Positions 1,142-29,385 of a stretch of DNA of 64,000 bases are shown piece after piece. Position 1 is the stretch's first letter; each line of letters starts with the position of its first letter. Location of the stretch: sequence record NC_048016.1. One strand, written 5' to 3'. The position numbers and the translations under genes are program-made. The notes beneath the pieces are model-generated. The model did no database searches, was not told the origin of the DNA, and was given only the letters and a program-made list of their open reading frames with translations.

Positions 1142-1151
1142 TAGGTGTCTG

Positions 1152-1194
1152 ACTAGGGGGAGGGATTCCTCCTCCTAGTTTACCCTTCTTTTTT
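1152..1194 (+). terminator. rho-independent terminator
   Basis: ACTAGGGGGAGG-GATT-CCTCCTCCTAGT stem followed by a T-rich tract. Confidence 0.75.
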
Positions 1195-1215
1195 AGACCT
1201 GCCGAGGAGGCTATT

Positions 1216-2052: not shown

Positions 2053-2063
2053 GAATAACGCGA

Positions 2064-2951: not shown

Positions 2952-2954
2952 TCA

Positions 2955-3782: not shown

Positions 3783-3785
3783 CAC

Positions 3786-3812
3786 AAGGCCCTTCGGGGC
3801 CTTTTCTTTTTT
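3786..3812 (+). terminator. rho-independent terminator (UUCG loop)
   Basis: AAGGCCC-TTCG-GGGCCTT followed by a T-run. Confidence 0.85.
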
Positions 3813-3832
3813 GATGGCGGGTAGGAGCCGAT

Positions 3833-5245: not shown

Positions 5246-5260
5246 TAGAGGCGTAACCGC

Positions 5261-6262: not shown

Positions 6263-6271
6263 GGAGCAGTC

Positions 6272-7213
6272 ATGACCATTCGTTTAAGCTGGCCTTCACA
6301 GGCAAGCAAGGCATTGACGTCCATTGAAATCTACCGCAAGGTGGGGCACAGTGCGACGCTTGACATCAACAACCCAGGCACCCCGACCGCAACGGTTGCA
6401 GGAGACGCGACTCAGTACGTGGAAGACGTGGCGAACCTCACCGAAAAGACCGTTTACACGTATTGGATTGCGGCGGTAAAAGGCACCGAGCGGTTGTTCA
6501 GTGCACCGATTGTTCAAGGTTTCTTCTTGGATACCGGCCCCGGTCCGCAGAAGCTGTTAATGGGCGACTGGTACGCAGGCTACTTTGGGGTTGTCTCAAA
6601 CCAAGAGCTCGCCGCCCGTGAGGACATCATCGGGACTGGGGGCGGATTAACGGCTGCGCAAGCGGCACAGTACAAGTACGCCCAGAACTGGTGGTACAAG
6701 TTCGTCTATAAAGGACGGATTGTGTATTACCCAAATGTTCGAACCGGGTATGCTGCGTACGCAGACACGTATAACGCAGGCATGGCGTACGGCGTTGACG
6801 GTGTGGGACCTATCATTCCTACGGGTGCGAATCCCACTGCTGGGGTTCCACAAACCGCGATGTTCACCAAAAACGGATATAAGTATCGCGTCCGGTTGCC
6901 GTATGGTTTGGATTACAGTGTTAGTGTTGCTTCAACGGACTATGACAACGGCGAGTTTCGTAATACCTTTGCGCGTTTGTTTGCGACCAACACCAGCTAC
7001 ACGGACCCGAAAGACCAAGGGAAGTTTGCCTCACTCGCGCTCCTGTCGAGCGGTACGACAACTACGGAGAATGGGACGACGGCAATGGTGCCCTTGTACA
7101 CCCCGGCAAACGCCTTGTACTGCTACGGCTATAACCCAACGGCCATCACCTACGCGGGCATAAGCGGTCAGACATTCAGCATGTTCTTTGTCCTTGAGTT
7201 GGTCTTACCATAA
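6272..7213 (+). CDS. putative virion/tail protein with N-terminal Fn3/Ig-like module, cassette gene C1
   Basis: 313 aa; MTIRLSWPSQ..IEIYR; ends VLELVLP like 9652..10551. Confidence 0.65.
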   Translation: MTIRLSWPSQASKALTSIEIYRKVGHSATLDINNPGTPTATVAGDATQYVEDVANLTEKTVYTYWIAAVKGTERLFSAPIVQGFFLDTGPGPQKLLMGDWYAGYFGVVSNQELAAREDIIGTGGGLTAAQAAQYKYAQNWWYKFVYKGRIVYYPNVRTGYAAYADTYNAGMAYGVDGVGPIIPTGANPTAGVPQTAMFTKNGYKYRVRLPYGLDYSVSVASTDYDNGEFRNTFARLFATNTSYTDPKDQGKFASLALLSSGTTTTENGTTAMVPLYTPANALYCYGYNPTAITYAGISGQTFSMFFVLELVLP

Positions 7214-7224
7214 CGGAGTGAATC

Positions 7225-8643
7225 ATGGGGTTTTATAATGGAACCGCGATGGAGTTACTCTGCCAACAGGTCATCCGTGACAATCCCAGTATGGCGGGGA
7301 GGCTTACTCCTGACGCTGTCACCGTCAATGGGACAGCGGTTGCCCGTAACAACAACGGGCGCAATACGCAGATCACGTTTGTTGGTATCCCGGGGAAAGG
7401 ATTCTTCGGCGAGTTAACCTTGTCTTACGACCGGATTAACTTACTTAACTTCACCGGGAACCTTTATTTCCCGGTGCAGATGTCCGATGGGGTCACCACC
7501 TACACAGAAGCGTTGCCGGACATTAATGACCAGCTCGGACTGAATCTCACCCGGGCGGATTTGGCCGCCCCGGATACGGTCTTGACGGGTGGGACGGTAG
7601 GCTTCACCAGTATCGATATCGCAATCGCTGCCAGTTCTGCGTTGTACAACGGCACGCTGCGGGTCAACTGGCGACGGACACCGGTGGGCAATTACACGGG
7701 CACCGGGCCGGGTCCTACTATGCTACTGGCAGGCGATGAGCAGTCTGGCTACTTTGGTGTTGTTCCTGCAGCAGAGATGTTTACTGCGCAAGAGCTGGTC
7801 AATGCCATTTTAGAAGGCACTGGACTGAGTGCGAACGTGGGCACGGCCTCGTACGACTGGATGAAGTTCTTCTACAAGGGCAAGGTGTTGTTCATTCCAA
7901 AACGCCCGTTGGTCGGTACTTCGTGGGATAACTACTATAAAGCCGGGTCAGCCTACGGTAGCGACGATCCGAATGGGCCGCTGTATCCGGGCAGTGACGG
8001 TGTGGCAGTCCAGCAAAACAAAATCATTGCAAAGCGCAGTGGGGATAAGTCGTACTACTTCCATCACCGACTGCCGCGTGGTGCAGAAAACATCATCGGT
8101 TCGTCAAGCCTGACCGGGGAAGACTACGGTTTGGTGAGAAAGATACTCGGGGGTGAATGGGGTAACGAGCCGGGCACGACCATTGGTCAGGCGGGCGTCT
8201 ACTACATGTCACAGCACATTGGTAATGCGTCACAGCCACAGCTCTTCTCTATCTACACCATGAAGGGTGAGTATTTCAACTCACAAATCTCCAAAACCCA
8301 GACTTACGGATACGTCCCGGTGTTGGAGTACGTGAACCCAGACGACACCGTGTTACCGGTGAGTGATTTCTCAGGCAAGTACAACATCACGGTGACGCCG
8401 CCGGTTGTGACGTACACCCCGCAGGTGAACGAGCTCAGTCCAATCGTACCGCTCGCAACCCGCACAACCCTGCTGACCCCGCCTGCGACCTCAGTAAGCG
8501 CGGATGACGGGTTAATGCCACTCACACCGCTCGCTGCAGCGACGCCGAAGTTGACCCCCGCGACTGTGACCGCCAGTACCCGGGTGCCGAATGCGAAAAC
8601 CTCGCTTAACACTACCAACGGTGTCCTTGGTGACTTTAAATAA
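7225..8643 (+). CDS. putative virion/tail protein, cassette gene A2
   Basis: 472 aa; colinear similarity to 3833..5245 from start to end. Confidence 0.7.
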   Translation: MGFYNGTAMELLCQQVIRDNPSMAGRLTPDAVTVNGTAVARNNNGRNTQITFVGIPGKGFFGELTLSYDRINLLNFTGNLYFPVQMSDGVTTYTEALPDINDQLGLNLTRADLAAPDTVLTGGTVGFTSIDIAIAASSALYNGTLRVNWRRTPVGNYTGTGPGPTMLLAGDEQSGYFGVVPAAEMFTAQELVNAILEGTGLSANVGTASYDWMKFFYKGKVLFIPKRPLVGTSWDNYYKAGSAYGSDDPNGPLYPGSDGVAVQQNKIIAKRSGDKSYYFHHRLPRGAENIIGSSSLTGEDYGLVRKILGGEWGNEPGTTIGQAGVYYMSQHIGNASQPQLFSIYTMKGEYFNSQISKTQTYGYVPVLEYVNPDDTVLPVSDFSGKYNITVTPPVVTYTPQVNELSPIVPLATRTTLLTPPATSVSADDGLMPLTPLAAATPKLTPATVTASTRVPNAKTSLNTTNGVLGDFK

Positions 8644-8662
8644 TGAATAGGAGAGTCGCGCG

Positions 8663-9652
8663 ATGAACTTTACTTTGCGCTGGCGCAATGACAACACCAA
8701 ACCGGTTGTCGTGCGTATTTACCGCAGCACCACGGTCATCGACCCCACCAAGCTACCGGCCGCAATCGCGACCCTCAGTAACGGGGAGACCGAGTGGGTA
8801 GACAACACTGCACTTTACGGTGTTACCTACTACTACTTCACCACTGTCACTAACCCCGCAACCGGCAAAACGGTGAACGGGGTTAACACGACGTACACGA
8901 TTGAGCAACGGCGTGGCGTGGGACCAAACACCCTGCTGTTCGGCAGTGAAACACTGGGCTTCTACGGGGATGTGATTTATGAAGATCAGTTCCCACTGAG
9001 TGCGTTCCAGCAAAAGGTGCAGGATGCCCTCGCCCTTAACAGCAGCACGTTCTCACCATCCTACCGGTTACCGGTGAGTAAGTATATCCGTAACGGTAAG
9101 ATTCTCTACATCCCGGTCTCGCCGCTCACGACACGTTTAACGTGGGCGCAGCTGTATGCCGCCGGCATGGTGTACGGCCGTGATGACAATGGTCCGGCAA
9201 ATGGGCGTGGGGATTTACCTGCAGCTATTCAGGATGCGGGCTGTACGTGGAAAGGGGACAAATACCGGATTCGTTTGATGCGCGGCTTAACGGATGCGCC
9301 AACAGAACCAGCACTGGCGTTCGATGCGAAATACGACGGTGTGTCCCACGACACATCCGATCTTACCGGCTTCAATGAATTCAACGACCTGTTTTACAGT
9401 GTGCAGAACTTGTTCCCGCTGAAACGCCGGTTGGAGGGTGTGCGTTACGCCAGTCCGCTCACAACAACCAACAGCGCGTATGCTGATGGGTATCTGACGA
9501 TGGAGCACGATACCGCATCTAATAAAGCGTTGTCACGTGGCCAAGTCACCTCGCCAATGACGGCAGATTTACTGACCACGATTCGTTATCGTTTACACAC
9601 CTCAACCGTAACTGCTTGGGTGCCGGTTATTGAATTAGTGGAGGACTACTAA
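8663..9652 (+). CDS. putative virion/tail protein, cassette gene B2
   Basis: 329 aa; MNFTLRWRN; FNEFNDL and MEHD motifs shared with B1. Confidence 0.65.
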   Translation: MNFTLRWRNDNTKPVVVRIYRSTTVIDPTKLPAAIATLSNGETEWVDNTALYGVTYYYFTTVTNPATGKTVNGVNTTYTIEQRRGVGPNTLLFGSETLGFYGDVIYEDQFPLSAFQQKVQDALALNSSTFSPSYRLPVSKYIRNGKILYIPVSPLTTRLTWAQLYAAGMVYGRDDNGPANGRGDLPAAIQDAGCTWKGDKYRIRLMRGLTDAPTEPALAFDAKYDGVSHDTSDLTGFNEFNDLFYSVQNLFPLKRRLEGVRYASPLTTTNSAYADGYLTMEHDTASNKALSRGQVTSPMTADLLTTIRYRLHTSTVTAWVPVIELVEDY

Positions 9653-10551
9653 TGGGTATTAAATTGCAGTGGCCCTCCCAGAGCGCCAAAGGATTAAGTG
9701 CGATTGAGATTTATCGCACAACCGGTGTGACCCCGTCGCTTAACCGCAACAACTTGCCTGCCCCCTTGGCAACCCTTGCAGCGACAGCAACCGCGTACGA
9801 AGACACCACGGTGGTAGAAAAGACTGTCTACAACTATTGGGTCTGCAACGTGAAGAACGGTGAGCGTATCTTTACGGCCCCAATTCAACGGGGTTATTAT
9901 CTGGATACGGGTCCGGGGCCGACGGAGTTGAAGTACGGGAACTGGGATGCGGGTTACTTTGGCACCGTTGCCGTCAGTGACCTGTTTACCTTTCAGGAAA
10001 TGAACTCCCAACTGGGGATTTCTCTGTTCCAATACACGCCGGATTTCTATCACAAGTTTATCTTTAAAGGGCGCATTCTGTTCTACCCAAACATTCGGGT
10101 GATGGTTCAGACGTGGAGCAATGTCTACTTAGCGGGCTTAGCATGGGGCAGCAATGCGGTCGCCTACATTAAACCCAACGGTCCGGCAGACACCCCACAA
10201 GGTCGCACCGTCAGCAAGAATGGTCGAGCGTATAACGTCCGCTTGCCGTTCAGTGCGGAATACAGTGTGACCGGTGGCCCTACCCTCAGCCAAGATGCAA
10301 TTGCCAATTTGGGAGAGTGGCGAAACACGATGGAGCGGTTATTCCTCGTTCCTGGGACGATGTCGCGCTGGGGCAGTGCGCCGCCAGATTCCCCGAGTAA
10401 CACCTCGAGTCTCCAAACGACGATGTTTGCACAAGCCTACGGCACGGCTAATATCTGGGTGGAACTTGGGGGTGCGCCGCAGGCCATTACCACAAACACC
10501 CAAAACCAAGCGATGTCCACTATGCTGGTATTGGAATTGGTCTTACCGTAA
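9652..10551 (+). CDS. putative virion/tail protein, cassette gene C2
   Basis: 299 aa; MGIKLQWPSQ..IEIYR, LDTGPGP, terminal VLELVLP; start overlaps the upstream stop (TAATG). Confidence 0.65.
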   Translation: MGIKLQWPSQSAKGLSAIEIYRTTGVTPSLNRNNLPAPLATLAATATAYEDTTVVEKTVYNYWVCNVKNGERIFTAPIQRGYYLDTGPGPTELKYGNWDAGYFGTVAVSDLFTFQEMNSQLGISLFQYTPDFYHKFIFKGRILFYPNIRVMVQTWSNVYLAGLAWGSNAVAYIKPNGPADTPQGRTVSKNGRAYNVRLPFSAEYSVTGGPTLSQDAIANLGEWRNTMERLFLVPGTMSRWGSAPPDSPSNTSSLQTTMFAQAYGTANIWVELGGAPQAITTNTQNQAMSTMLVLELVLP

Positions 10552-13429: not shown

Positions 13430-13463
13430 AATAAAAAGAAGAAAGGGTGCCCCGAAGGGCACC
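13430..13463 (-). terminator. rho-independent terminator ending the radical SAM operon
   Basis: On minus: GGTGCCC-TTCG-GGGCACC followed by a T-rich tract. Confidence 0.8.
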
Positions 13464-13467
13464 ACTG

Positions 13468-14109
13468 TTATTCTACCGACGGATTAAACTCCGCCGCGTC
13501 GAGTGAGGCGTAATCGCCCTGCTCCGCAAATGCACGGATACGGGTTTTGTACGCGGTCAACTGAACGTGCAGCTGTGCGTTACGTGCGACAATCAGAGAG
13601 TACAGCATCTCTGTGTCTTTCGCTTCCCACTCTTCCAGCGCTTGGTTATCGGCAGTCACCCAATACTCCGGCACGGTGTTCGTTTGCACGAAGCCGGCCA
13701 GGGTGGTCAGGGTCTCACCTGCGGTCTGGAACATGTGGTCTTTGTACGCAATGTCAGCCGTGACCGCTTCACCGTACGCTGCATTAGTGGCCTGAAGTTT
13801 CTTGGCCAGCAGAGTATAGCAATACGCTTTGGTCGACTGCAACTCTTTGAGGTAATCCTTCACCTGAATCCCCAACACGTCTTTGATAAACGTTTTGGTT
13901 TGGCGTAGGGTGTAGTTGGCTTCGAACTGGGTCTGCCCCTGCTCTTGCAACTGACGCAGTGCATCTTTCTCACTGAGTCCCTCTAAGAGTGCGTAGTGTA
14001 AACGCTTGGCCAGCGTGACATCGCCGTTGGGGTCAAAGAACAACCCGTTGCGGTCAATCTGGCCATCGCCGTTTTCAAACCGCGCTTTTATCTCGTCAGC
14101 ACTAAGCAT
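13468..14109 (-). CDS. DUF4376-like protein (tail-fibre associated)
   Basis: 213 aa; C-terminal HMFQT...YWVTADNQ...LY..IV.R...L...K.RI pattern resembles DUF4376. Confidence 0.6.
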   Translation of the reverse strand: MLSADEIKARFENGDGQIDRNGLFFDPNGDVTLAKRLHYALLEGLSEKDALRQLQEQGQTQFEANYTLRQTKTFIKDVLGIQVKDYLKELQSTKAYCYTLLAKKLQATNAAYGEAVTADIAYKDHMFQTAGETLTTLAGFVQTNTVPEYWVTADNQALEEWEAKDTEMLYSLIVARNAQLHVQLTAYKTRIRAFAEQGDYASLDAAEFNPSVE

Positions 14110-14636
14110 TCTTTCTCTCCCACGAATCCAACTTTGGTCAACATGTCATAGGACATGATTTCAAAGTCGATACGAAGATCCAGACGGTACTGCAAGTTCG
14201 GCAACGGCTGGTCATTTTCTTGGAACGCCTGCATGAACATCATGTCATCGAAGTAATGACACGCGCTCTCGGGGTTGCGCACCATCCAGACCGGGACATC
14301 CGGGAAGGACAGACACAGTGCCACCAGAGAATCACCGCCACGATCGATAGTGCCGGTACGCAGGATGTTTACCTTTGAAGCAGGGGCCGCCAGAATACGC
14401 GCTTCGAAACCCGGGTTACGCTTTTCGATTTCTGCTAACGAGTCGTGGCCGTTCTCCACGCACTGAATCGGCAGGACAACGTTAAGAGCAAAACGGTTAA
14501 TCAAACGCAGCCAGTGATCGTTGAAATCATCGGCAGGCACGATAGCGTGAATGTTAAACAGCTTATAATGCTGTAAGAACGCTTCGATTTTGCGACTATC
14601 GTACTTCGTAAAATTCTGGAGAAGCAGGCTTTTCAT
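14088..14636 (-). CDS. hypothetical protein in the radical SAM cassette
   Basis: 182 aa; overlaps both neighbours (41 and 22 nt). Confidence 0.6.
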   Translation of the reverse strand: MKSLLLQNFTKYDSRKIEAFLQHYKLFNIHAIVPADDFNDHWLRLINRFALNVVLPIQCVENGHDSLAEIEKRNPGFEARILAAPASKVNILRTGTIDRGGDSLVALCLSFPDVPVWMVRNPESACHYFDDMMFMQAFQENDQPLPNLQYRLDLRIDFEIMSYDMLTKVGFVGEKECLVLTR

Positions 14637-15993
14637 TCTTGAATTGTTCCTTGCGGTCAGTTTGTTCCACAGCCATGGTCATCTCACGGATGGCGGTGAC
14701 GTGTAAAGGCTGTTCTGCAGCTTCGCGGGTGAGTTTCTCTTCAACAGCAAAGTTGCGCTTCTGTTGGCACTGGTAACAGTTACAAACAGACTTGTCGTAC
14801 TGCGATTCGTACGACCCGAAACGTTGTTTCCACCACTGCGCCACTAAGAGCTTCGCGGTAGTCCAACCACACTGGCGACGTTCGCCGTGATACTCTTTAC
14901 GAGCGTCTTCTTCACCGTCGCCATTTTCATACGCCGCCGCCACGCACGAGGCACACAGGTGCTTCGCTGGGCAACCGATACACTGGTCAGGATACGACTT
15001 CCACTGTTCCTGAACTTCGGCCAGCAGTTTACCGCCGTCGGTGTTCACGATGGTTTGACCTTCGAGCTTACCGATGGCCTGACGGGTGGTTACCGTGGAC
15101 ATGAAGCGGTTACAACCGAAGATGTTACGGTCGAAGCCGAGACAAGTCATGTACACCGTGGTGCCGCAGTGCGGACGCAGACGTTGTGGGTCGTAGCGTA
15201 CAGAGTCATCATGGATGAGCTTCTCACGCCAGTCCGGGTTCCACAGTTGGTCAACATCCAGACCGTCCGGCAGCACGTGACCGATTTCAGAGTTCTGGTC
15301 TAAGTGCAGACCTTTCTCAATGAAATACTCCGCCACTTCGATGAACTGGTTGGCAATCTCGAGTGCCATCTGGCGCGGTAACACGTCTTCGAAAACGACG
15401 TTACCGTACAGACGACCGCCCCCGGTCACATCAATCAGCGACTTCATCCCAGCACCGTACTGCATCAGCGTTTCTTTCGTGAAGGTGGCTTTCACCCCAA
15501 TCTCACGAACACCGATTTCTTGCAGAAGCTTATAGCCGGCGACCGCTGCTTGGTAAGACCCTTGACGGGACGTGGTGAAGATACGGTACTTATCGTGGGT
15601 CTCGGGCAGACCATCGATAGAGACACCGATCGACAGGTAATCTTTCCAGCGATTCAGAATCTCCAGCGCCAGCGGTTTGTCAAACAACGTGCCGTTGGTG
15701 GAGATAGAGAACACGTAAGGCAGATTGTGCTTTTTGCACAGCTCTTCTGCGGTTTCGAAGGCCGCTTTCAGCAGCTTCGGCTGCATGAAGGGTTCGCCAC
15801 CGATGATATCGATGATGATACCGTCGATACCTTGGTTCTTCGAGAAGAAGCGATGTTTATCGCGATTAAAGCAGGCGTGAATAAAATCAACGACATCAGC
15901 GACTTTGTTATTACGCGGATACTTACGCTCGTAGCAATACTCACAGTCGAGGTTGCACGATAGGTTGGTGACTATCTGGTAGGTTGCATCCAT
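14596..15993 (-). CDS. radical SAM/SPASM-domain enzyme, probable CXXX-repeat peptide maturase
   Basis: 465 aa; CNLDCEYC (CxxxCxxC), IIGGEPF and STNG motifs; C-terminal Cys-rich SPASM-like region HCG...C...GCNRF...CIGCPAKHLCASC...CGW. Confidence 0.9.
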   Translation of the reverse strand: MDATYQIVTNLSCNLDCEYCYERKYPRNNKVADVVDFIHACFNRDKHRFFSKNQGIDGIIIDIIGGEPFMQPKLLKAAFETAEELCKKHNLPYVFSISTNGTLFDKPLALEILNRWKDYLSIGVSIDGLPETHDKYRIFTTSRQGSYQAAVAGYKLLQEIGVREIGVKATFTKETLMQYGAGMKSLIDVTGGGRLYGNVVFEDVLPRQMALEIANQFIEVAEYFIEKGLHLDQNSEIGHVLPDGLDVDQLWNPDWREKLIHDDSVRYDPQRLRPHCGTTVYMTCLGFDRNIFGCNRFMSTVTTRQAIGKLEGQTIVNTDGGKLLAEVQEQWKSYPDQCIGCPAKHLCASCVAAAYENGDGEEDARKEYHGERRQCGWTTAKLLVAQWWKQRFGSYESQYDKSVCNCYQCQQKRNFAVEEKLTREAAEQPLHVTAIREMTMAVEQTDRKEQFKNEKPASPEFYEVR

Positions 15994-16005
15994 CCCTATC
16001 TCCCC

Positions 16006-16890
16006 TTATTTTTTAATTGGATTAAGCCAGTTCATGATGTAACGGTAGCCGTGCTCACCGATGGCCAGTGCAATCTTGTTGCAGCCACGGTCCACGACCA
16101 TCTCAACGTTCTCAGGAACTTGCAGGTCGCCATTCGGTTGACTGACGATAATTTCACTACAGGCATTACACGCATCTTCTTCGAAGAACTTCTCGAGCTT
16201 GATGATGGTGTCACGCTTGTTAATGCGGTTGAGCTTACGCATGTTGTCTTGCAGACGCTCAAAGCCGTACACGAAGTTTAACACGTGGTCAGGCGACAGC
16301 ACTTTCTTCATCTGGTTATCGAACAGGTAGTTCATGCCGAGGAAACCAAGATGGTGAATGGCGTCTTGCATTTTCATCATGCCTTCGTGCCAGCGCATGT
16401 CCCCGATCTTCTCACGGGTTAACACTGACCAGAGGATAACGTTGTCCAGCTGGGCGATGACTTCAAACGCTTCGGTATCACCGGAACGAGCAAAGTCCAT
16501 TAAACCACGGGCATCATCTTCGTAACCGTCGATGGAGACCACAACACGATGGAAGGTTTTCAAAAACTCGACTTGCTCTAAACGTAACTTACGTCCGTTT
16601 GTGAAAAGATAGTGCACGGCAGAAGGACGTTCTACGCGCATCATCTCGACCGACTCGACGAGTTTACGGTAAGACAGTAACGGCTCACCCCCCGTCCAGA
16701 TGATCTCTTCCACACCGGGATTCTTTTTCAGTAACTCCATCATTGCCTCTTCATGGGTTTTACGAGACACGTCCCCTTTGACCATGTGAATCTCACCCGC
16801 ACAAAACGAACAATTGAGGTTACACTTCGACGTCAATGCTACGTTAATGGTCTTTGCAGGTGAGTAAACATCTTTACTTAACGTTCTCAT
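16006..16890 (-). CDS. second radical SAM protein (short C-terminus)
   Basis: 294 aa; CNLNCSFC, WTGGEPLL, FTNG, VVSIDG; only a short CNAC...GC tail. Confidence 0.85.
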   Translation of the reverse strand: MRTLSKDVYSPAKTINVALTSKCNLNCSFCAGEIHMVKGDVSRKTHEEAMMELLKKNPGVEEIIWTGGEPLLSYRKLVESVEMMRVERPSAVHYLFTNGRKLRLEQVEFLKTFHRVVVSIDGYEDDARGLMDFARSGDTEAFEVIAQLDNVILWSVLTREKIGDMRWHEGMMKMQDAIHHLGFLGMNYLFDNQMKKVLSPDHVLNFVYGFERLQDNMRKLNRINKRDTIIKLEKFFEEDACNACSEIIVSQPNGDLQVPENVEMVVDRGCNKIALAIGEHGYRYIMNWLNPIKK

Positions 16891-17800
16891 CCGTCATTCC
16901 GTACAGGCGACGTTGGAAAGAGAACAGTGGGTCGGTGTCTCGTACATCTTCACCCGCCTTTAACAGACGTGGTGAGCGATACGCATCGTACAGTGCGTTA
17001 AGAACGGATTGACGCTCACCCATGCGGATAAGGTCGTCCAGTTCAACCGGGGACGAAATAAACGGTTCCAGCGCAGCCTGTTGTTCGTCGGTGAACTCTT
17101 TCAGCTGTGACTGGAGCAGGAAGCGAATCAGTTTGCGATCATCCGCCGTGGAGTTCGGGACAGCGCCAAACTCAGTCTGACAGAGATAGGCCATCCACGG
17201 TTTACGGATGCGGAGTGTTTGCGCATGCGGGTCTGCGATGTAGACCCACTCTTGCTTCTCTGCATCCCATGCAAACTTATAACTAAACGCGAGTAAGTCT
17301 GCCAAGCAGTCGATATTCGCGGCTTCAAGGCCAGAGAACGGGTGATACATTTCACGGTCTTTCTCCACGCTTCCAGTGCCGGCTTCCACCAGTTTGAATA
17401 AGTGGGACCAGCTTCCGCAGTAATCGCTGCTGTAGCTACGCACGCACACCGGACGCATGCCGAGTTCTTTAAAGGACTCGAACATCAGTTCCAGTGGTGC
17501 ACTATAGTTCAGTACCGAATCTGTGAAAAAATACTTGTCGTTGACAAGCTTCCCGGTAAAACCAGAACCGCCTAAGGCGAACTGAATGGATTTCACGTTC
17601 AGCTTGCCCACCGTGGTCGCATCAATCACGGTGTACTCTTTTTTCGTAAAGTTGCGACCGCGAAGCTTAGGCCATTCAAACTGGTCCATGGCAATCAGCC
17701 GCAGCTCGTCGTTGATGTGTGCGTTAACACTGTCCGGTGACGAGATGTGAATTGGGTAATTCATGCTCGTGCGGTACGCAAGATGATCGTTACTCTTCAT
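16874..17800 (-). CDS. hypothetical protein in the radical SAM cassette
   Basis: 308 aa; RBS AGGGGA; 17-nt overlap with radical SAM 2; no family recognised. Confidence 0.7.
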   Translation of the reverse strand: MKSNDHLAYRTSMNYPIHISSPDSVNAHINDELRLIAMDQFEWPKLRGRNFTKKEYTVIDATTVGKLNVKSIQFALGGSGFTGKLVNDKYFFTDSVLNYSAPLELMFESFKELGMRPVCVRSYSSDYCGSWSHLFKLVEAGTGSVEKDREMYHPFSGLEAANIDCLADLLAFSYKFAWDAEKQEWVYIADPHAQTLRIRKPWMAYLCQTEFGAVPNSTADDRKLIRFLLQSQLKEFTDEQQAALEPFISSPVELDDLIRMGERQSVLNALYDAYRSPRLLKAGEDVRDTDPLFSFQRRLYGMTDENVK

Positions 17801-17812
17801 TAGGTTCCCCTG

Positions 17813-18022
17813 TTAACTCGGGAAGGAGACTGATTTCGCACCGCCTGAGCTACTCCAGCTACAGGTTCCGCCGCAGTTGTACGCGCCAGCACGAATCCCA
17901 CCCAAGTTGTTGGTGTTGTTACACGTTCCACGGTTGGCGATATAATCAACCGCCTGTCCCGTGGTAATATAGCGTTCGATGCTCGCCACGCGGTTACCGA
18001 TGTCTTTCAAGCTTACTGCCAT
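17813..18022 (-). CDS. short precursor-like peptide (leader plus truncated Cys core)
   Basis: 69 aa; MAVSLK leader and CGGTCSWS motif homologous to the two long peptides; RBS AGGAG. Confidence 0.75.
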   Translation of the reverse strand: MAVSLKDIGNRVASIERYITTGQAVDYIANRGTCNNTNNLGGIRAGAYNCGGTCSWSSSGGAKSVSFPS

Positions 18023-18031
18023 AGCCTACTC

Positions 18032-18460
18032 CTACGGTCCAGAACAGCCTGCTCCACAACTCCCGCCACAGCCACTACCGCAACTTCCCGAGCACCCGCC
18101 AGAACATTTGCCTGAACAGTTACCCGAGCATGTGCCAGAACAACCGCCGGAGCAGCCGCCGCCACAGTTACCGCCACAGCTGCCACTACAACCACCGGTG
18201 CAGCTAGATGAACAGTTGCCCGAACAGGATGACGAACACCCAGACGAGCAGTTACCCGTACAGCCACCAGAACAGCCGTTACCGCACGTCCAGCTACAAG
18301 AGCCGTTACAGTGCAGTGCCGCTGGGGTGAAACCGTTGAGTAAATCAGCATTATTAGTAGTGCGTCCACCGATGTAGTTTTGCACGCCTGCTTCAGTTTT
18401 TAGTGCGGTGTTCTCAATATTGACAACACGGTCACGCACCGATTTTAATGAAATCGCCAT
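18032..18460 (-). CDS. CXXX-repeat Cys/Ser/Gly-rich precursor peptide (23 perfect repeats)
   Basis: 142 aa = 50-aa leader + 23 x C-X-X-X; RBS AGGAG. Confidence 0.9.
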   Translation of the reverse strand: MAISLKSVRDRVVNIENTALKTEAGVQNYIGGRTTNNADLLNGFTPAALHCNGSCSWTCGNGCSGGCTGNCSSGCSSSCSGNCSSSCTGGCSGSCGGNCGGGCSGGCSGTCSGNCSGKCSGGCSGSCGSGCGGSCGAGCSGP

Positions 18461-18468
18461 TTCCGCTC

Positions 18469-18858
18469 CTAAGGGCTGCTACAACCAGCACTGCAGTTAC
18501 TGCTACAGGTGCCAGAGCAACCGCTAGAGCAGCTGCTGCCACATGAACCTGAACAGCCGCTTGAACAGCCACCAGAACACGAGGATGAGCAACCTCCCCC
18601 GCAACCACCAGAACACGAGCCCGAACAGTTACCTGTACACACGCCGCTACAGCTTCCTGAGCAGCTCGAGCAACCGTGACTACAACCTGACGAACACGTC
18701 CAACTGCACGACCCGTTACAACGGGCCCACGTATCAGGTTGGCCTGCCAATAGATTCGCATTGTGAACTTTGCTGTTCACCTGCCCCTCTACGGACGCGC
18801 CGGTTGCTGCTTGGACTCGGTCAAGACGGGCACTTAGTTCTTTAAGTGATATCGCCAT
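18469..18858 (-). CDS. CXXX-repeat Cys/Ser/Gly-rich precursor peptide (21 Cys)
   Basis: 129 aa = 46-aa leader + 20 x CXXX + one CXX; RBS AAGGGAAGG. Confidence 0.9.
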   Translation of the reverse strand: MAISLKELSARLDRVQAATGASVEGQVNSKVHNANLLAGQPDTWARCNGSCSWTCSSGCSHGCSSCSGSCSGVCTGNCSGSCSGGCGGGCSSSCSGGCSSGCSGSCGSSCSSGCSGTCSSNCSAGCSSP

Positions 18859-18878
18859 TACCTTCCCTTTTTAATAAG

Positions 18879-18912
18879 ACACGGGCACTCGCCATATAGA
18901 CGAGGCCCGTGT
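18879..18912 (-). promoter_or_regulatory. stem-loop upstream of the precursor peptides
   Basis: ACACGGGC/GCCCGTGT plus CTCG/CGAG stem; loop contains TATG on the minus strand; only a weak U-tract. Confidence 0.45.
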
Positions 18913-18921
18913 GTAATTATA

Positions 18922-20121
18922 TTAACGTGAACCGGCATCAGCCTGTACATCGTCACGTGTGGTCAAGTTGGCGTTGACGTGCACGTTTGCCTGAACCACG
19001 CCGCCATACTGCTTGTGCAGGTACTGGGTGTGTGGATCGGCGGCAGACAGGTGGTTAGCGAGCGTCTGGTTAACACTGGCGATGTTGCCCTCGGTCGTGG
19101 TGACACGACGGGTCAGTGCGGTCAGGTCAACACGCAGCTGGTCAATCTGCTGCTGTGCGTCACCGGCTCCGGACTTGAGGTCATCAATCTGGTCTTGCAA
19201 CCCAACGGCCGTTTGCTTCAACTCATTCACGGTTTTCTGTAACGTCAATACCAGTGAATTGAGGTTGGCCACAATCAACGTCATCTTCTGGTAGTTTTGG
19301 TCTACCGTGTTCAGTTGGTCGTTGAAGGTGGTCAGCGAACTGACGATGGCATCAATGCGCCCACCCAGTGCCGTATCAGCAGCCTTAAGGTCGCCAATCT
19401 GGACGAGGGTTGCATCGATAGCTGCCTGCACGCCGGCAATCAACGCACGGATTTCGGTTGCGGTCAAACCATCAATATCGTGGATATCAAGGTTGTGCAC
19501 GTTACCCGTGGCATTGATGTGGGCATTCAGCGCGTCCAAGAAGTTATTCTTGATGTCGCCGATGATGTCTTTGATTTTCTCAAGCTGAACGGCATCGCCT
19601 GAACCAATCGCATCCAGAATACCCGAGAGCAGGGTAATGACGTATTCAAAACCAAAGATATCGCCAACGTCTTTAAACGCCGGGGCACCCGGTAGCGTAT
19701 CCGGGAAATCGATTAAGTCGGCAAAGTTCACCTTCTTATTATCAATGCCCAGAATCGCAATCGCATTTTCAATCGCAGTCACGTTCGCAGACATTGGCCC
19801 ACCGACAACCTGAGCGGTCACGATGATGTCTGTTGGAATGCTGCTGTTGGTCACTACAACTGCCATCACGACTTCTTTGTTGCCCGAGAGCTTCATGTAG
19901 GCCGGATGAGCGAAAATCAGTTCGTAGTCGGTACCACGTTTATACGGCGTGGTGGGCGAGTTCGTGGCACGCAGTTTAAAACTGTCTGCGTAAAACGGAC
20001 CTGCCGGAAAAGCAAAAGACCGGTTAACTTTACCGGAACCCAAGACCACGGGGATACTTACCGCGTTCGATGTCAGAGTTCCTTTAAGGTCAAGCGGATA
20101 CTGGAAAATAATATCACTCAT
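18922..20121 (-). CDS. coiled-coil tail-fibre-like virion protein
   Basis: About 399 aa from MSDIIF; N-terminal GPFY...DYELIF domain shared with the giant fibres; long heptad region; NHLSAADPHTQY fibre motif. Confidence 0.7.
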   Translation of the reverse strand: MSDIIFQYPLDLKGTLTSNAVSIPVVLGSGKVNRSFAFPAGPFYADSFKLRATNSPTTPYKRGTDYELIFAHPAYMKLSGNKEVVMAVVVTNSSIPTDIIVTAQVVGGPMSANVTAIENAIAILGIDNKKVNFADLIDFPDTLPGAPAFKDVGDIFGFEYVITLLSGILDAIGSGDAVQLEKIKDIIGDIKNNFLDALNAHINATGNVHNLDIHDIDGLTATEIRALIAGVQAAIDATLVQIGDLKAADTALGGRIDAIVSSLTTFNDQLNTVDQNYQKMTLIVANLNSLVLTLQKTVNELKQTAVGLQDQIDDLKSGAGDAQQQIDQLRVDLTALTRRVTTTEGNIASVNQTLANHLSAADPHTQYLHKQYGGVVQANVHVNANLTTRDDVQADAGSR

Positions 20122-20165
20122 CTCCAAGCTCCCTTACGAGAGGGCATCCCTGCCCTCACCAGTGG

Positions 20166-23100
20166 TTAAGACGACAAATTACTCGTTGGGATTAACATAA
20201 GATTGATGGTTACCTCACCCAGCGTGACCATCTTTCCGTCAGGCCCGAAGAACTTCGAGGCGACAACGACTTCCCGGTTCGACCCATTCGCGCGCTCCAA
20301 GAACGGCGGACAGTAGCTGATTTCCGGAGCCACCACACTCACCACCCCTGTGGTGTCTGCCACCGGAACATAGACATGGGAGACGGTCTCCAACACGTTG
20401 AGGTTACCGGACTGCGTACCTTGGTCTGAGGTGAATGCCACCACCGACGTCCCACTCGAGCGGATTAACTCGCGTTGGGTTGTCCCATTCCAATCGTAGG
20501 CAATAAAAGCAATGTGGCAGATGGTCCCACCGGCGGTACCTGCCTGAATGACTTCGATCCCAACCGTGTGCTGCCCGTTAGACACCGGGAAGTCCTGGGT
20601 GGCGAGCGCGTTTGACCCTTTCGAGGTAATGCCGGATGCCACACGCACGCCATCAATGTAGACGTGACACATGTCATCCACCGCAAACTTAAGTCGCAGC
20701 GTGCCCCCGGTGGTGGTCACTTTGAACTTGGTCGCATACGTACCGTAGCCCGGAATCGTCCGTGGGTTGATGTCAATCCAGATAAGCCCCAACGCATTTG
20801 CATCCGGGTTCTCCGCTGCTGTCACGGCCACTGCACGGGCAGGAGCCCAGAACAGCTCAGGCAACACTGCCCCGGAATACCACGGCTGGGAAGCCGGGAC
20901 ATAACGGTTAATCAGCGGACGAGACAACAATGATCCCACCGCCAGTGACAGTGCGGACTGACCCACGTACCCATCACCCGAGGTCGCAATCGGTAACGGT
21001 TCCAGCAGACCGAGCGGTGACTCTGCCCGTTCACGCACCACGTTCGAGCCGTGGCTGTACGCAACCCCCTCATGCTCCTCTAACTGACGTACCGCCCCCA
21101 GACGTTTCACCGGGGTAATGTTCTCCTCGATGATACGGCTGCTGTCGGTCTTGACGTAACCCACGTAAAGCAGGTTACTGCTGTCAGGGTAACGTTCGGT
21201 ACTGACCCGGTACCGCGCCTTCGTGGTGCCTTCGTCTGGGTAGACTTCAGCGTGGAAATAGAAGGTCTGGTTTCGGTAGTCACTGAACGCCGACGAGAAG
21301 TCAATGCTGTACTGGTCGAGCACGTACTCTTTCGAGTTAATGAACAGTCGCTCTGACTCGGTCAGGTAAAGAATCCACCCTTCCGCCGTCTTCACGCCCG
21401 CCAACACCACCGGTTGCGCATTCGCCGGGGAACCAAACGGACTGGCCATGAAGTCCGCAATCGGATACGCGTCGCCTGAGGAGAACACCGGGTCCAGTTT
21501 GAAATACGAATTCACCATCGCATTCAAATCTTTCACCCACACCCACGTGTTTGGGCTGTACGTTGGTCGGTCAAGCCCCAGTGCCCCGGTGGAGCTGGTC
21601 CACTGGTTACCGGTCAGGGTCAACACCGCACGGAAGTTCAATGCACCCCCATTCCCGACTTGGGCGATACGCAGCACGGACGGCAGATAGAGCACAAACT
21701 TCTGCCCATCGTTGGACACGAGTTGCGGCTGACCAAAGCGGCGGTCTTTTCCACCAAAGCTGAAATCCAATCCGACGTTGGCGATGTTCAAGTCAAGGTC
21801 GTTCTGGAACGTCAACAGTTGGAGGGTGCTGGAGCTAAACGCGAGAATCCCGTTGGAAACCGACGGGTACATCACAAAGTAGTAATGGTCGATTTTATTC
21901 ACACCGTCTACAAAGCGTTGTGCCGTGGCCTGTCCCAAGAAGAGCTGCTGCGGTGTCCCAATCGCAAAGCCCCACAGTGCGACATACAGTTTCCCGATTT
22001 GGTCAGCGGCCATCAGTCGCTCGGATGCGTAGCCGTTCGCTGCACCCGCTGGGGCGTTAGCCAACATGATACTGCGGACTTTCGCCCACTCGGTATCGTT
22101 CAGCGTCAGTTTGTCGGCGGTAAAGTTCGGGTTCCCGGTCACGTTCTTGTACTGCACCGTTTCAGGCTTAGTAAAGAAGCACCCGTTCAGCGTGCCTTTA
22201 TCTGCCGCATTCACTTTCACCATCGCCAGCTGGGACATCGCAGCGTAGGTTGCCGTGGTGATAACACGCCGGTTGTTGGTTGGACCAAAGCCCCCGTAAC
22301 CCGGTACGTCGTAATCCGTGTCGGTTGAATACAACACCTCAACGCACAACGCATCCTTGGTACCGGTGAGCCAGATGGCTTTAGAGTCCCCACCGAAGAA
22401 CAGCGGGTAGGCCATGCCAGAGGCGTACACAGACCCACGTCCTTGGTCGAGTTTGGTGGTGTTACCCACAACCGCACCTGTCGTCACATCGGCTGACAAC
22501 GAGTCGTAATGGTCACCCCCGCCCGGAACACCCATCGTGACTATCTGCACCGGGACATCACTGTCATTACCAACCGAAAGCACAGCGACCTTGTCATCGT
22601 GGTGTGCCACAAAGGCACGCTGGTTGGCTTGGGTCCCTGTCCACTTCAGTGGGTAGTTCGTGGTCAACAAATCCACGCCGGTTTTGTACTTCGCACCGGT
22701 ATCCAGTAACTGCAGTGGGAAGATTTCCGGGTGCTCCAGTGTCACCGTCAGGGTATCGAAGTCGAGCGTGAATGTCGTGTACCAGTTCTTGAAGCTCAAT
22801 GACTCGGTTGCTTTCGCCAGCCAAATCGTTGGCGTCATTGCCACCCGTAACACTTCATCCTCTTGCCCCAACACCCGGTTACACGTTGGCCCGTGCACCA
22901 GATTGCGCCCTACCGTGAAGGTACTGAGTGCGGCTGGGCTGATGTACGCTACCCGGTCGGTCTCGGTGTTGGCGGTGTCGTACCCCCCTTCGGCACGGAG
23001 CAGTAACCACGAACCTGCCACGCCCTTCATCCCGTTCAAGGTTTCAAGGGTAAAGGCCACGTCTTGTGCGCCGATGCTATTGAGTGAAACCGACGCCAAG

Positions 23101-25253
23101 GCCACACGGTAACTGTCGTTCGCCAGTCGGGTGCGCAGCAGATACACTTTACTGCCGTAGACCACGAGGTCATCCGTTTCCCCGGCGGGCACCATTGCCG
23201 CATTACTGCCTGCCACATCCATGATGGTCGGGAACGTCACTCGCACCACATTCAGGTGGCGATTGTGGTCGGCTGTCCCGGCGAGGTCAACGAGGTAATA
23301 CGCCCCGTCGCTGCCTAAACAGATAAGGGCATCCTGCCCCGGCACCACCACTGCACTGAGTGTCACCCCCGGGTACTTGGTGGTCATCCCGGCTGGCTGA
23401 TAGCGCTGTGAAGTTTGTTGGACGTTGCTGAGCGTGTTGTCGTCGTTAAAGGTACCGTAAGCGTAATAGATGTGGCGATCAGTCAGACCGTCCGTTCCGT
23501 TACGCAGAATATACAACCGGTCCCCTTCAAAACGCATCGCCCCGTAGAACTGGCTGTTGTTCTTGCCATACCCTTCGTAGTTACCCTGTGCCGGGATAGG
23601 CAGGAACCCGAGGTTGCCGTACGACGCCCCAATAACCGCCCACGTTGGAATCAGACCGTTGGCTTTGCTTTCCAAATCCGCCAAAGTCTTCTCAAAGAGA
23701 TACCCCTGTTTAGCCGTCACCACACGGTCTGTGCTGGCATCGATAATATCCCAGAGTAACACCAAGCCGGCTGCCGAAGAGCTGGCGTAGGGTACGTTGG
23801 TCACGTCTGCGAGGGTATGGGTGTGGTTGGTCAGGGATTTGTTGGCCACGGCGGCGGTTAACGCTTTGGTTACCGGCTTATCAAGCGGTGCGGTGTTCTG
23901 CATCTTCTCGACACCGACGTCCGCAGGCGTCAGGGTTAAGGTCTGGTCTGCATCAAAACCTTTGCCGTTGACGGTGTAAGTGTCATCGACGTAGTTCCCC
24001 AGCAAATCCCGCATCGCGGTAATACCCGCCTGTGAAATTGCATAACCGTCACTGAGTGAGGTACGGTTGGACGTGACCTTGATCAGACCCCGCACCCCCA
24101 CTGAGGCTTCGGGCAGGTTCGCTTCCAGACGGAACGGGGCGTAGGACTTGCCTGACCCGTAGACCTTCACGGTTTCCGTAGAGGACATGTACGCGTTAGC
24201 TGCTTTGAGTTTCACCTCGTGCAGGTACATCTCCACCATGTCGGGTGTAATCAAATACACCCCGTTGAAGACCGGAGCCAATGCATCAGGGCCCGAGTGC
24301 ACCATTAAGGTGTTCAGCCCCGCTGACATCTCCACCGCCACACCCGGGTTCGTGTTCGCACTGTCTGCGGTGAACCGTAAAGTCTTTTTGGTGGAGACCA
24401 ACACGTTCGGCCCTTTGAAGGTGATAACGTGGTCGTTGTTGGCGGTGGTGTACGTCAGGACATTGTTGTTGAGAACACGCAAGCGACCGAACACGTCATT
24501 AAACGCGGTGTCGTTACGCATCAGCAAATCAACGTGCTTTTGCTGCAAACCGGTTGTGGCCATCAGGGTCACGAGCTGGTCAATGGTGCGACCAAATGCC
24601 CGGGTGGCGTCCACGGCTTTATCCGTGACCTTCAAGGCCCCGATGTCATCCGCAGTGTACGAATGCCCGTGGGACTTCAGCAGGTGGTGCTGATACATCC
24701 CATCGTCGAACACTTTCTTGCCGGTTTGATAGATGAGCTCAGTGACTTCACTGTACGCGGCATCCATGTCCCCTGCCCGCTTAATCAGGCCCAAACGAAT
24801 GTCATTTAACGCGGAGACAATCTCATCGCGGGCAATGGCTTCGTCCAAGTCCTGTGGCGGGTCGATAGCTGGAATGGTCGGCGCATAGCGCATCAACGCA
24901 GACCAGTCTTCGTTACGGGGGTCTTTCAGGTCACTGCTGACCAGCCATTTGCCAATCTCGCTCTGCGGTACGCGGTAATCACGCCCCACAGCGTAGATGC
25001 TGTATTTGATGGCATCGTGGTTCAGCAGCATTATCCCGCCAAACACCGCGGCTTGGAATGCCTCAGCGGCTTCTTTGTAATAGTAGCCGAGGTAATAGTC
25101 CATGCCCTCGATAAGCGGGACATCATTTAAATCGGTGATAACCAGCCCGGTGCGGTAGAAAGGGCCTTCCGGCGGAATAACCGTATTGAAACGGTTTGGG
25201 AACGTCGAGACTTTCAACGTGCCTTCAAACTGGGCCGGGGTTTCCGTCGCCAT
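20166..25253 (-). CDS. giant tail fibre / tail-associated virion protein
   Basis: 1695 aa; shared N-terminal domain, NTAPLDKPV...NHTHT fibre motifs, C-terminal beta-sandwich (PA14-like) segment. Confidence 0.75.
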   Translation of the reverse strand: MATETPAQFEGTLKVSTFPNRFNTVIPPEGPFYRTGLVITDLNDVPLIEGMDYYLGYYYKEAAEAFQAAVFGGIMLLNHDAIKYSIYAVGRDYRVPQSEIGKWLVSSDLKDPRNEDWSALMRYAPTIPAIDPPQDLDEAIARDEIVSALNDIRLGLIKRAGDMDAAYSEVTELIYQTGKKVFDDGMYQHHLLKSHGHSYTADDIGALKVTDKAVDATRAFGRTIDQLVTLMATTGLQQKHVDLLMRNDTAFNDVFGRLRVLNNNVLTYTTANNDHVITFKGPNVLVSTKKTLRFTADSANTNPGVAVEMSAGLNTLMVHSGPDALAPVFNGVYLITPDMVEMYLHEVKLKAANAYMSSTETVKVYGSGKSYAPFRLEANLPEASVGVRGLIKVTSNRTSLSDGYAISQAGITAMRDLLGNYVDDTYTVNGKGFDADQTLTLTPADVGVEKMQNTAPLDKPVTKALTAAVANKSLTNHTHTLADVTNVPYASSSAAGLVLLWDIIDASTDRVVTAKQGYLFEKTLADLESKANGLIPTWAVIGASYGNLGFLPIPAQGNYEGYGKNNSQFYGAMRFEGDRLYILRNGTDGLTDRHIYYAYGTFNDDNTLSNVQQTSQRYQPAGMTTKYPGVTLSAVVVPGQDALICLGSDGAYYLVDLAGTADHNRHLNVVRVTFPTIMDVAGSNAAMVPAGETDDLVVYGSKVYLLRTRLANDSYRVALASVSLNSIGAQDVAFTLETLNGMKGVAGSWLLLRAEGGYDTANTETDRVAYISPAALSTFTVGRNLVHGPTCNRVLGQEDEVLRVAMTPTIWLAKATESLSFKNWYTTFTLDFDTLTVTLEHPEIFPLQLLDTGAKYKTGVDLLTTNYPLKWTGTQANQRAFVAHHDDKVAVLSVGNDSDVPVQIVTMGVPGGGDHYDSLSADVTTGAVVGNTTKLDQGRGSVYASGMAYPLFFGGDSKAIWLTGTKDALCVEVLYSTDTDYDVPGYGGFGPTNNRRVITTATYAAMSQLAMVKVNAADKGTLNGCFFTKPETVQYKNVTGNPNFTADKLTLNDTEWAKVRSIMLANAPAGAANGYASERLMAADQIGKLYVALWGFAIGTPQQLFLGQATAQRFVDGVNKIDHYYFVMYPSVSNGILAFSSSTLQLLTFQNDLDLNIANVGLDFSFGGKDRRFGQPQLVSNDGQKFVLYLPSVLRIAQVGNGGALNFRAVLTLTGNQWTSSTGALGLDRPTYSPNTWVWVKDLNAMVNSYFKLDPVFSSGDAYPIADFMASPFGSPANAQPVVLAGVKTAEGWILYLTESERLFINSKEYVLDQYSIDFSSAFSDYRNQTFYFHAEVYPDEGTTKARYRVSTERYPDSSNLLYVGYVKTDSSRIIEENITPVKRLGAVRQLEEHEGVAYSHGSNVVRERAESPLGLLEPLPIATSGDGYVGQSALSLAVGSLLSRPLINRYVPASQPWYSGAVLPELFWAPARAVAVTAAENPDANALGLIWIDINPRTIPGYGTYATKFKVTTTGGTLRLKFAVDDMCHVYIDGVRVASGITSKGSNALATQDFPVSNGQHTVGIEVIQAGTAGGTICHIAFIAYDWNGTTQRELIRSSGTSVVAFTSDQGTQSGNLNVLETVSHVYVPVADTTGVVSVVAPEISYCPPFLERANGSNREVVVASKFFGPDGKMVTLGEVTINLMLIPTSNLSS

Positions 25254-25285
25254 GTGTAAACTCCCACTTCTTAAAGAAAACGGAA

Positions 25286-25331
25286 GCCGTCCCCCGAGAG
25301 GGACGGCGCTTACGGACGGGTTGTCCGTAAG
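25286..25331. other. two adjacent GC-rich hairpins without a U-tract
   Basis: GCCGTCCC/GGGACGGC (25286-25307) and CTTACGGAC/GTCCGTAAG (25309-25331). Confidence 0.55.
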
Positions 25332-25340
25332 GACTTCCCG

Positions 25341-29375: not shown

Positions 29376-29385
29376 TTAGTTCTCC

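Follow-up and report, generated by a model that had tools for sequence, protein, structure and literature searches.

Cys-rich peptides of Erwinia phage Wellington resemble tail-fibre tips and are encoded beside two radical-SAM enzymes

The stretch of DNA studied here (64,000 nucleotides, hereafter the window) belongs to Erwinia phage Wellington (NC_048016/MH426724, 100% identity), whose host is Erwinia amylovora and which is a jumbo phage of the SPN3US-like group of phiKZ-related phages. It carries a cassette that encodes, in this order, the fibre protein gp184, three Cys-rich peptides that we call pepA, pepB and pepC, the accessory protein gp180, two radical S-adenosylmethionine (rSAM) enzymes, rSAM2 and rSAM1, and finally gp177 and gp176, all on the minus strand. 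Coordinates are those of the window, in which position 13468 corresponds to position 137468 of the record. Our comparisons indicate that the three Cys-rich open reading frames (ORFs) are probably free-standing copies of a tail-fibre tip module and that the rest of the cassette is likely to be its maturation machinery. Since this module is found at tail-fibre ends beside the same rSAMs, the cassette most likely matures a part of a virion fibre and not a secreted peptide. An earlier note on this DNA, made from the letters alone, had already favoured modification of a virion appendage over a secreted ribosomally synthesised and post-translationally modified peptide (RiPP), and the fusions of the module to tail-fibre C-termini, together with the adjoining rSAMs, support that preference.

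A Cys-rich module in free-standing and fibre-fused forms

The peptides pepA (129 amino acids, 18469-18858), pepB (142 amino acids, 18032-18460) and pepC (69 amino acids, 17813-18022) all match phrog_6085 (E 7e-28, 5e-35 and 7e-25, respectively), and the first two also score above the 20-bit cut-off of the NCBIfam CXXX-repeat family TIGR04114 (23.7 and 24.4 bits). In pepA an N-terminal helix and a junction lead into a CXXX array of 21 Cys that ends three residues before the stop, while pepB has a helix, an 'NNADLLNG' junction and an array of 23 Cys; pepC has the same helix and junction (CGGTCSW) without the long array. Consecutive Cys are four residues apart in 19 of the 20 steps of pepA and in all 22 steps of pepB, a periodicity that is far beyond chance. 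The AlphaFold model of pepB has a helix at residues 5-18, with a predicted local distance difference test (pLDDT) of about 80, and a second helix at residues 23-32. The leader strings in which the earlier note had seen short heptad coils are exactly as it quoted them.

The arrangement is well kept among the 18 SPN3US-like loci examined (L012-L029), the order pepA, pepB, pepC being found in 18/18. The pepA array has exactly 21 Cys in every one of them, although the identity of rSAM1 drops to 59%, which points to a fixed structural length of the pepA chain; the corresponding counts are 20-23 for pepB and 2-5 for pepC. The cores of the 36 arrays from these loci consist of 29% Ser, 25% Cys, 25% Gly and 9% Thr, and none contains Asp or Glu. 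The spacing between Cys is 4 in 590/714 steps and 3 in 112/714, and 78% of Cys are followed by Ser or Thr. At the DNA level this is no recent tandem repeat. Two of the loci (L019 4542-5453 and L028 4543-5454) have an extra rSAM2-like gene of 303 amino acids between pepA and pepB, and hence three rSAM genes per cassette.

The decisive comparison is with proteins in which the same module is fused to a fibre. A profile of the three window peptides, compared with 1.84 billion protein representatives, gave 421 matches at E<=1e-3. Among the best 150 of these 421, the full junction is present in 36, and 22 of the 36 are proteins of 185-559 amino acids that carry the module at their C-terminus. All 22 match phrog_6085, and every annotated co-match is a tail or tail-fibre family. 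The module has a constant order, in which a short amphipathic helix is followed by a linker, the junction, and an array, extending as far as the C-terminus, in which Cys recurs at every fourth position in a background of Ser, Gly and Thr; in free and fused proteins alike, only 2-7 residues separate the end of a full array from the stop. The junction follows the pattern …L-x-G-x5-aromatic-x-C-x-G-x-C-S-W-x-C, and it is nearly identical in free and fused proteins, reading '...NNADLLNGFTPAALHCNGSCSWTC' in pepB, '...SNADMLEGQHGDYYRCSGCTWTC' in the L036 fibre and '...NIDAETLNGQAPDYYRCANGCSWTC' in the L035 fibre. The 22 fused proteins never differ at the two junction Cys, at the Ser and Trp, or at the Cys that follows; the Gly and Tyr on the upstream side reach at least 90% conservation. 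The earlier note had likened the end of the leaders to the NAD.LDG motif of trimeric phage fibres; the resemblance is real, and NAD.L.G is part of this conserved module junction (for example '...VPNADKLDGYDGDYYRCNNGCSWTCSSS...' in P0145).

The similarity extends upstream of the array. In several fusions the match spans the profile from positions 5-13 onward, so that the Wellington 'leader' aligns with an internal helical segment of the shaft, and an hhalign comparison places the peptides on the last 100 columns of the fusions with a probability of 99.8% (E 2.9e-30). What the Wellington 'leaders' line up with is thus the last shaft segment of fibres, not RiPP leaders. Finally, PF27846 (tSAM_targ_Cxxx_rpt) is recorded on fused fibres themselves.

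The same conclusion is reached from the side of the enzymes. Homologues of rSAM1 with 32-36% identity are found on small phage or prophage contigs, and in each case a protein of 236-568 amino acids that ends in the module lies just upstream; the N-terminal parts of these neighbours match tail-fibre PHROGs and their C-terminal ends match phrog_6085. In L008, for instance, a protein of 236 amino acids matches the N-termini of tail-fibre PHROGs with residues 1-70 (E about 1e-6) and phrog_6085 with residues 66-176, and it is encoded after the P2-type proteins GpU, GpW, Baseplate_J and Tail_P2_I. The 384-residue fibre of L032 matches tail-collar and tail-fibre families with E-values down to 1e-55 and has a C-terminal array; here and in L035 the fusion is situated between baseplate wedge or tail proteins and the tail sheath. 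In the lambda-like loci L033 and L138 it is the central fibre J (E 1e-167 in L033) that precedes the tipped fibre. Downstream of the module, the fused-fibre loci encode homologues of the accessory protein and of the rSAMs. Fibre chaperones are likewise encoded directly after the fibre gene in P2 and lambda.

In the reverse test, Radical_SAM genes were present within 5 kb downstream in 5/5 informative fusion loci, and a hidden Markov model of the gp180 family matched a neighbour of about 250 amino acids in 10/12 loci. Taken with the rSAMs beside the fusions, this indicates a conserved core of tip module, accessory protein and rSAM(s); gp176 is outside this core. The cassette stands directly after the fibre gene in the window and in 18/18 SPN3US-like loci, and it also lies in P2- and lambda-type tail modules, L009 being the exception. 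In the collection of cultured phages that was searched, relatives of rSAM1 occur only in 67 SPN3US-like records; metagenomes and prophage-like contigs are the source of the fused forms. With the leader alone as query, a word-based search yielded no candidate, and the only contig recovered by a strict DNA pattern back-translated from the junction was one already known.

A second and more distant class of Cys-rich proteins (216-667 amino acids, 31-122 Cys) was also encountered, with a different junction ('...HLEEVRQV.DD..NNARC...'), in L037 (7177-7956), L038-L042 (7301-7951) and L053-L055 (Margulisiibacteriota, Termititenax genomes). These proteins adjoin rSAMs that are 23-28% identical to rSAM1, and on viral contigs tail proteins (phrog_3267, E 2e-58) precede them.

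The radical-SAM enzymes and the accessory protein

The larger enzyme, rSAM1 (465 amino acids, 14596-15993), has its CxxxCxxC motif at residues 13-20. Nine diverse homologues (34-64% identity) share with it the Cys of this motif (C13, C17, C20) and seven more towards the C-terminus (C276, C294, C338, C341, C347, C350, C375), which are arranged in the SPASM-type manner expected for two auxiliary clusters; Pfam's own SPASM model did not match rSAM1 at E<=0.1. The protein begins directly with CxxxCxxC and has no N-terminal RRE domain. Its best NCBIfam families are TIGR04115 (113.8 bits against a cut-off of 350, residues 7-365) and PapB (107.7 bits, cut-off 340); among solved structures CteB comes closest (5WGG; E 1e-9 with the single sequence and 3.7e-30 with a profile). 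In rSAM2 (294 amino acids, 16006-16890) the CxxxCxxC motif is accompanied by three conserved C-terminal Cys, which indicates one auxiliary cluster, and PapB is the second-best family (49.2 bits). The chemistry of cross-linking by the two enzymes would, from these relationships, be of the thioether type.

The accessory protein gp180 (308 amino acids, 16874-17800, phrog_8030) has a confident predicted structure (pLDDT 83, predicted template-modelling score 0.79). No PDB entry shares the fold of this model (best E 0.087, TM about 0.1), and in BFVD only its own orthologue was matched. Profiles of gp176, gp177 and gp180 likewise found nothing among solved structures.

Several known systems share part of this organisation. 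One is the CXXX-repeat peptide with its rSAM-SPASM maturase (TIGR04114/TIGR04115, PF27846), which has Cys at every fourth residue and an adjoining rSAM, and whose maturase family TIGR04115 is the top match of rSAM1. The Wellington enzyme stays far below the TIGR04115 cut-off, however, and the phage system adds a second rSAM, an accessory protein of novel fold, and a substrate that either is a tail-fibre C-terminus or is derived from one, with an invariant C-S-W junction. No published function or chemistry was found in the literature for the CXXX-repeat family. PapB, which forms Cys-to-Asp thioethers in the CX3D repeats of the ranthipeptide freyrasin, is the second-best family for both rSAMs and acts on Cys repeats with a period of 4-5, but the match is below the cut-off and there is no context of leader removal; a PapB-type acceptor is excluded, since the phage cores contain neither Asp nor Glu. 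CteB, the maturase of SCIFF, is a thioether-forming SPASM enzyme with an rSAM core and auxiliary clusters. The similarity to it is confined to CteB residues 102-283 (the rSAM core), and nothing in rSAM1, which begins with its CxxxCxxC motif, is equivalent to the N-terminal RRE of CteB. The SCIFF family is also distant in score (58.8 bits against a cut-off of 425) and in substrate, SCIFF being a 45-residue peptide with six Cys whereas pepA and pepB have 20-23. A further parallel is QhpD, an rSAM/SPASM enzyme that cross-links Cys in QhpC, a small protein that stays as a structural subunit (the gamma subunit of quinohemoprotein amine dehydrogenase). TIGR03906 matches rSAM1 at 66 bits; the sequence relationship is nevertheless weak, the acceptors in QhpC are Asp and Glu, and substrate and biological setting differ.

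Among phage proteins, the comparison is with the fibre chaperones (P2 gpG, lambda Tfa, T4 gp38/gp57A and Peptidase_S74), whose genes likewise come immediately after the fibre gene and whose presumed target is the distal end of the fibre, before assembly or in the course of it. They are non-enzymatic helpers or self-cleaving domains, in contrast to the two radical enzymes seen here, and no similarity in sequence or fold to them was found for gp176, gp177 or gp180.

Proposed maturation and docking of the tip

In the scheme that we favour, the peptides would be made late, along with the fibre genes, and rSAM1 (SPASM-type) and rSAM2 (with a single auxiliary cluster) would act on the unfolded array in the cytoplasm. 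The gp180-family protein probably assists them or presents the substrate, in place of the RRE domain that rSAM1 is missing. Carbon-sulfur cross-links of the thioether type would turn the array into a covalently laddered rod. The leader would be retained, and its helix, the counterpart of the final shaft helix in fused fibres, would oligomerise and dock the tip on a virion fibre, for which gp184, having no distal domain, and the three giant paralogues encoded upstream are candidates. The enzymes would stay in the cell, unpackaged. The timing of expression, the oligomeric state (including trimerisation) and the docking partner are in each case inferred.

A more specific version, which we put forward tentatively and consider somewhat less probable than its opposite, is that many tailed phages, among them P2-like, lambda-like and SPN3US-like ones, cap a fibre with a rod consisting almost entirely of Cys, Ser, Gly and Thr that is thioether-laddered by two rSAMs, the accessory protein being a novel type of substrate-presenting partner in place of the RRE; in the jumbo phages the tip would be split into A, B and C, which would cap the three giant fibres one-to-one or as a heterotrimer.

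NCBIfam, Pfam and PHROGs know the pieces of this system as families of unknown role, and it is the link to the virion fibre that is new; we found no paper that connects tail fibres with these rSAMs and CXXX repeats. Self-catalysed links, such as capsid chainmail, are a known means of stabilising virions covalently; dedicated radical enzymes are, to our knowledge, not known to do this. If true, the proposal would describe the first case in which a virion protein is cross-linked by enzymes that use radical chemistry, with RiPP-type chemistry recruited to build the host-recognition apparatus of a phage. It would also give a function to a curated but unexplained family (the CXXX-repeat targets), account for the conserved rSAM pair in the tail module of SPN3US and its relatives from Erwinia, Cronobacter and Salmonella, and define a new accessory protein fold.

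Evidence against a fibre tip and alternative explanations

Several observations weigh against the peptides being fibre tips. In the Wellington peptides the array is preceded by only some 45 residues, and none of the three has its own fibre shaft; gp184 is not significantly similar to the shafts of fused fibres; and a search of the giant fibres encoded in the window did not find the junction motif in them. The AlphaFold model of pepB gives the array no confident structure (pLDDT about 45-53). The presence of pepA, pepB and pepC in the virion is inferred. As for the enzymes, rSAM1 falls well short of the curated cut-off of each named family (113.8 bits against 350 for the best), and the chemistry proposed for both rSAMs is read from family resemblance only. 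In the L009/L010 lineage, moreover, the cassette is free-standing among non-structural genes (nucleotidyltransferase, Acb2/Tad1, GIY-YIG and Cpn60). Lastly, Clostridia-type genomes (Lachnotalea, Clostridiaceae) encode CXXX peptides of 52-88 amino acids that adjoin related rSAMs and resemble ordinary RiPP precursors, which indicates a free-peptide role in the wider family.

Three alternatives, a free RiPP, a disposable assembly clamp and a metal-binding array, each retain some appreciable probability. The last two points bear on the first of these, that the cassette makes an ordinary RiPP, in which the N-terminal residues (about 45) would be a leader removed by a host protease and the modified core a free peptide, working inside the host or after lysis, for example against competitors, host defences or metals. 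The layout of precursor and maturase with several precursor paralogues is as expected for such a system, pepA and pepB pass the TIGR04114 cut-off, and the nearest families of rSAM1 are RiPP maturases, as is the nearest structure, CteB. The short peptides of Lachnotalea and Clostridiaceae and the position of the L009 cassette among non-structural and counter-defence genes would also fit. We nevertheless consider this explanation unlikely. The supposed leader matches an internal fibre shaft, and many lineages have bona fide tail fibres that end in the module; the cassette is placed in the tail modules of three different phage architectures; the number of Cys in pepA is strictly 21 in all 18 genes, and rSAM1 lacks the N-terminal RRE domain of CteB. 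The earlier note had pointed out that the cassette has no transporter or recognisable peptidase, and indeed Pfam, NCBIfam and PHROGs reveal no peptidase or transporter family in any cassette protein, the fold of gp180 being unlike any solved peptidase structure. Its statement that the leaders have no double-glycine site stands for a conserved site but not to the letter, as Gly-Gly is present in Wellington pepB (IGGR) and pepC (LGGI); the SPN3US leaders read IRNK and LAGL at these places, and since the pair is not kept in orthologues there is no conserved double-glycine site. Unlike a classical exported RiPP, the system thus has no encoded leader peptidase or exporter that we could find and no conserved cleavage site, though a host enzyme might cleave the leader.

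As a side observation on the exceptional jumbo-type locus L009 (5877-6098 and surroundings), its cassette lies beside a protein of the Acb2/Tad1-hairpin type, a counter-defence family, a further rSAM and a chaperonin, with no tail genes adjoining.

An equally improbable explanation is that the module is an assembly aid, a trimerisation or folding clamp for fibres that would be absent from the mature particle or cut off from it, with the rSAMs stabilising the clamp; the C-terminal intramolecular chaperones that some fibres possess would be a parallel. The cassette does occupy the slot of the P2 and lambda fibre chaperones, a DUF4376-family gene and an annotated 'tail assembly chaperone' adjoin it, and in L011 the neighbouring fibres have Peptidase_S74 self-cleaving chaperone domains. 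However, there is no recognisable cleavage domain or site beside the module, and two radical enzymes and an accessory protein would be costly for a disposable clamp. Several fibres of 185-260 amino acids have the module as their sole C-terminal domain and would otherwise be tipless. The absence of the peptides from the SPN3US virion proteome list, which could be taken in favour of a clamp, is explained by mis-annotation (see below).

Least probable is that the CXXX array binds metals or iron-sulfur clusters, as a metallothionein-like store or a scaffold serving the rSAMs, or that its Cys are converted, for example to formylglycine: Cys does make up 25% of the core and is separated by small residues only, anaerobic sulfatase-maturating enzymes (anSME) are among the relatives of rSAM1 and one homologue was named 'AslB' by JGI, but the sulfatase target motif is absent, the anSME scores are much weaker than those of thioether-forming maturases, and the fusion to fibre C-termini and the invariant C-S-W junction would be left unexplained.

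Annotation errors and virion proteomics

The peptide genes are poorly represented in public annotations. RefSeq calls gp183 at 18432-18761 on the minus strand, in another frame than pepA, and it is the frame of 129 amino acids that matches phrog_6085. In SPN3US, gp166 (L002 6570-6905) is annotated in the wrong frame and pepA and pepC are unannotated; the true peptide ORFs lie at L002 6094-6486, 6497-6901 and 6917-7123. In the records of CR5, Phobos and Caitlin the arrays are covered by calls on the opposite strand, and the phiEaH2 record has short or mis-framed calls there. With substrate genes missing or mis-framed, proteomic searches against those annotations are blind to the peptides.

This matters for the mass spectrometry of SPN3US virions, in which gp167-173 are listed and gp161-166 are not (PMC5694885). 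The SPN3US proteins gp161-165 are the orthologues of Wellington gp176-180, and the absence of these enzyme and accessory orthologues from the virion list indicates that they are not packaged. The absence of the peptides, on the other hand, is uninformative, because gp166 is mis-framed and the true ORFs are unannotated. Later SPN3US papers do not mention gp161-167, and a search for further data sets on virion content yielded none.

Flanking genes and genome context

The earlier note had described the cassette as lying co-directionally between a coiled-coil fibre gene and a DUF4376-like gene, downstream of three giant fibre genes, and each element of this description was confirmed. The fibre gene, gp184, is on the minus strand at 18922-20121 if read from an ATG (399 amino acids) or 18922-20127 from a TTG (401 amino acids). 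It matches the 'virion structural protein' family phrog_2163 (E 1e-101), with coiled-coil-type matches at about residues 225-385, and is the orthologue of SPN3US gp167, which was detected in virions (PMC5694885). As the note had it, the protein ends shortly after an HLSAADPHTQY motif, which occupies residues 359-369 of the 401-residue reading, 32 residues from the end, with no distal domain beyond. The idea that gp184 and a peptide represent one fused fibre in split form was considered and is unsupported, because gp184 is not similar to the shafts of fused fibres.

At the other end, gp176 (213 amino acids, 13468-14109, minus strand) is the last gene of the unit and is 33% identical to SPN3US gp161. 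Taken alone it has no match to Pfam DUF4376 (PF14301) at E<=1, but 5/6 members of its family do match (best E 7.7e-12), which supports the label 'DUF4376-like'. Its neighbour gp177 (182 amino acids, 14088-14636, phrog_7988) overlaps the genes on both sides and is restricted to the jumbo-phage versions of the cassette.

The packing is operon-like, with intergenic gaps of 8-12 nucleotides or overlaps, and pepA, pepB and pepC each have their own AGGAG-type ribosome-binding site. The gap of 63 nucleotides between the gp184 stop and the pepA start contains a strong RNA hairpin at 18879-18912 (minus strand; -26.5 kcal/mol, z-score -4.9), followed by the ribosome-binding site. The corresponding gap between gp167 and pepA in SPN3US (L002 ~6038-6075) has a different sequence with a comparable hairpin and then a T-run. 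The Wellington hairpin could serve as a partial terminator or as an RNA-stability element, and in that role fix how strongly fibre and cassette are expressed relative to each other. A terminator-like hairpin was seen in the cassette only 3′ of gp176, where a GC-rich hairpin with T-runs on both strands, resembling a bidirectional terminator, lies at 13446-13463 directly after the stop. A scan for sigma-70 promoters was uninformative, as it is for a phage of this type.

Upstream of gp184, the giant fibre/baseplate paralogues gp185, gp186 and gp187 extend over 20166-33048 on the minus strand. These genes, of 1695, 1344 and 1220 amino acids, are orthologues of SPN3US gp168, gp169 and gp170 (45, 39 and 39% identity, respectively), which are virion 'baseplate/tail fibre candidates' (PMC5694885). 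On the plus strand, at window positions 215-10551, ten co-directional ORFs of 275-472 amino acids form recurring groups with similar N-termini, such as 'M..Y....ELV.D.INRDNPG..' and 'M.F.LRW.N.NT', and together they look like a paralogue array of putative virion structural proteins.

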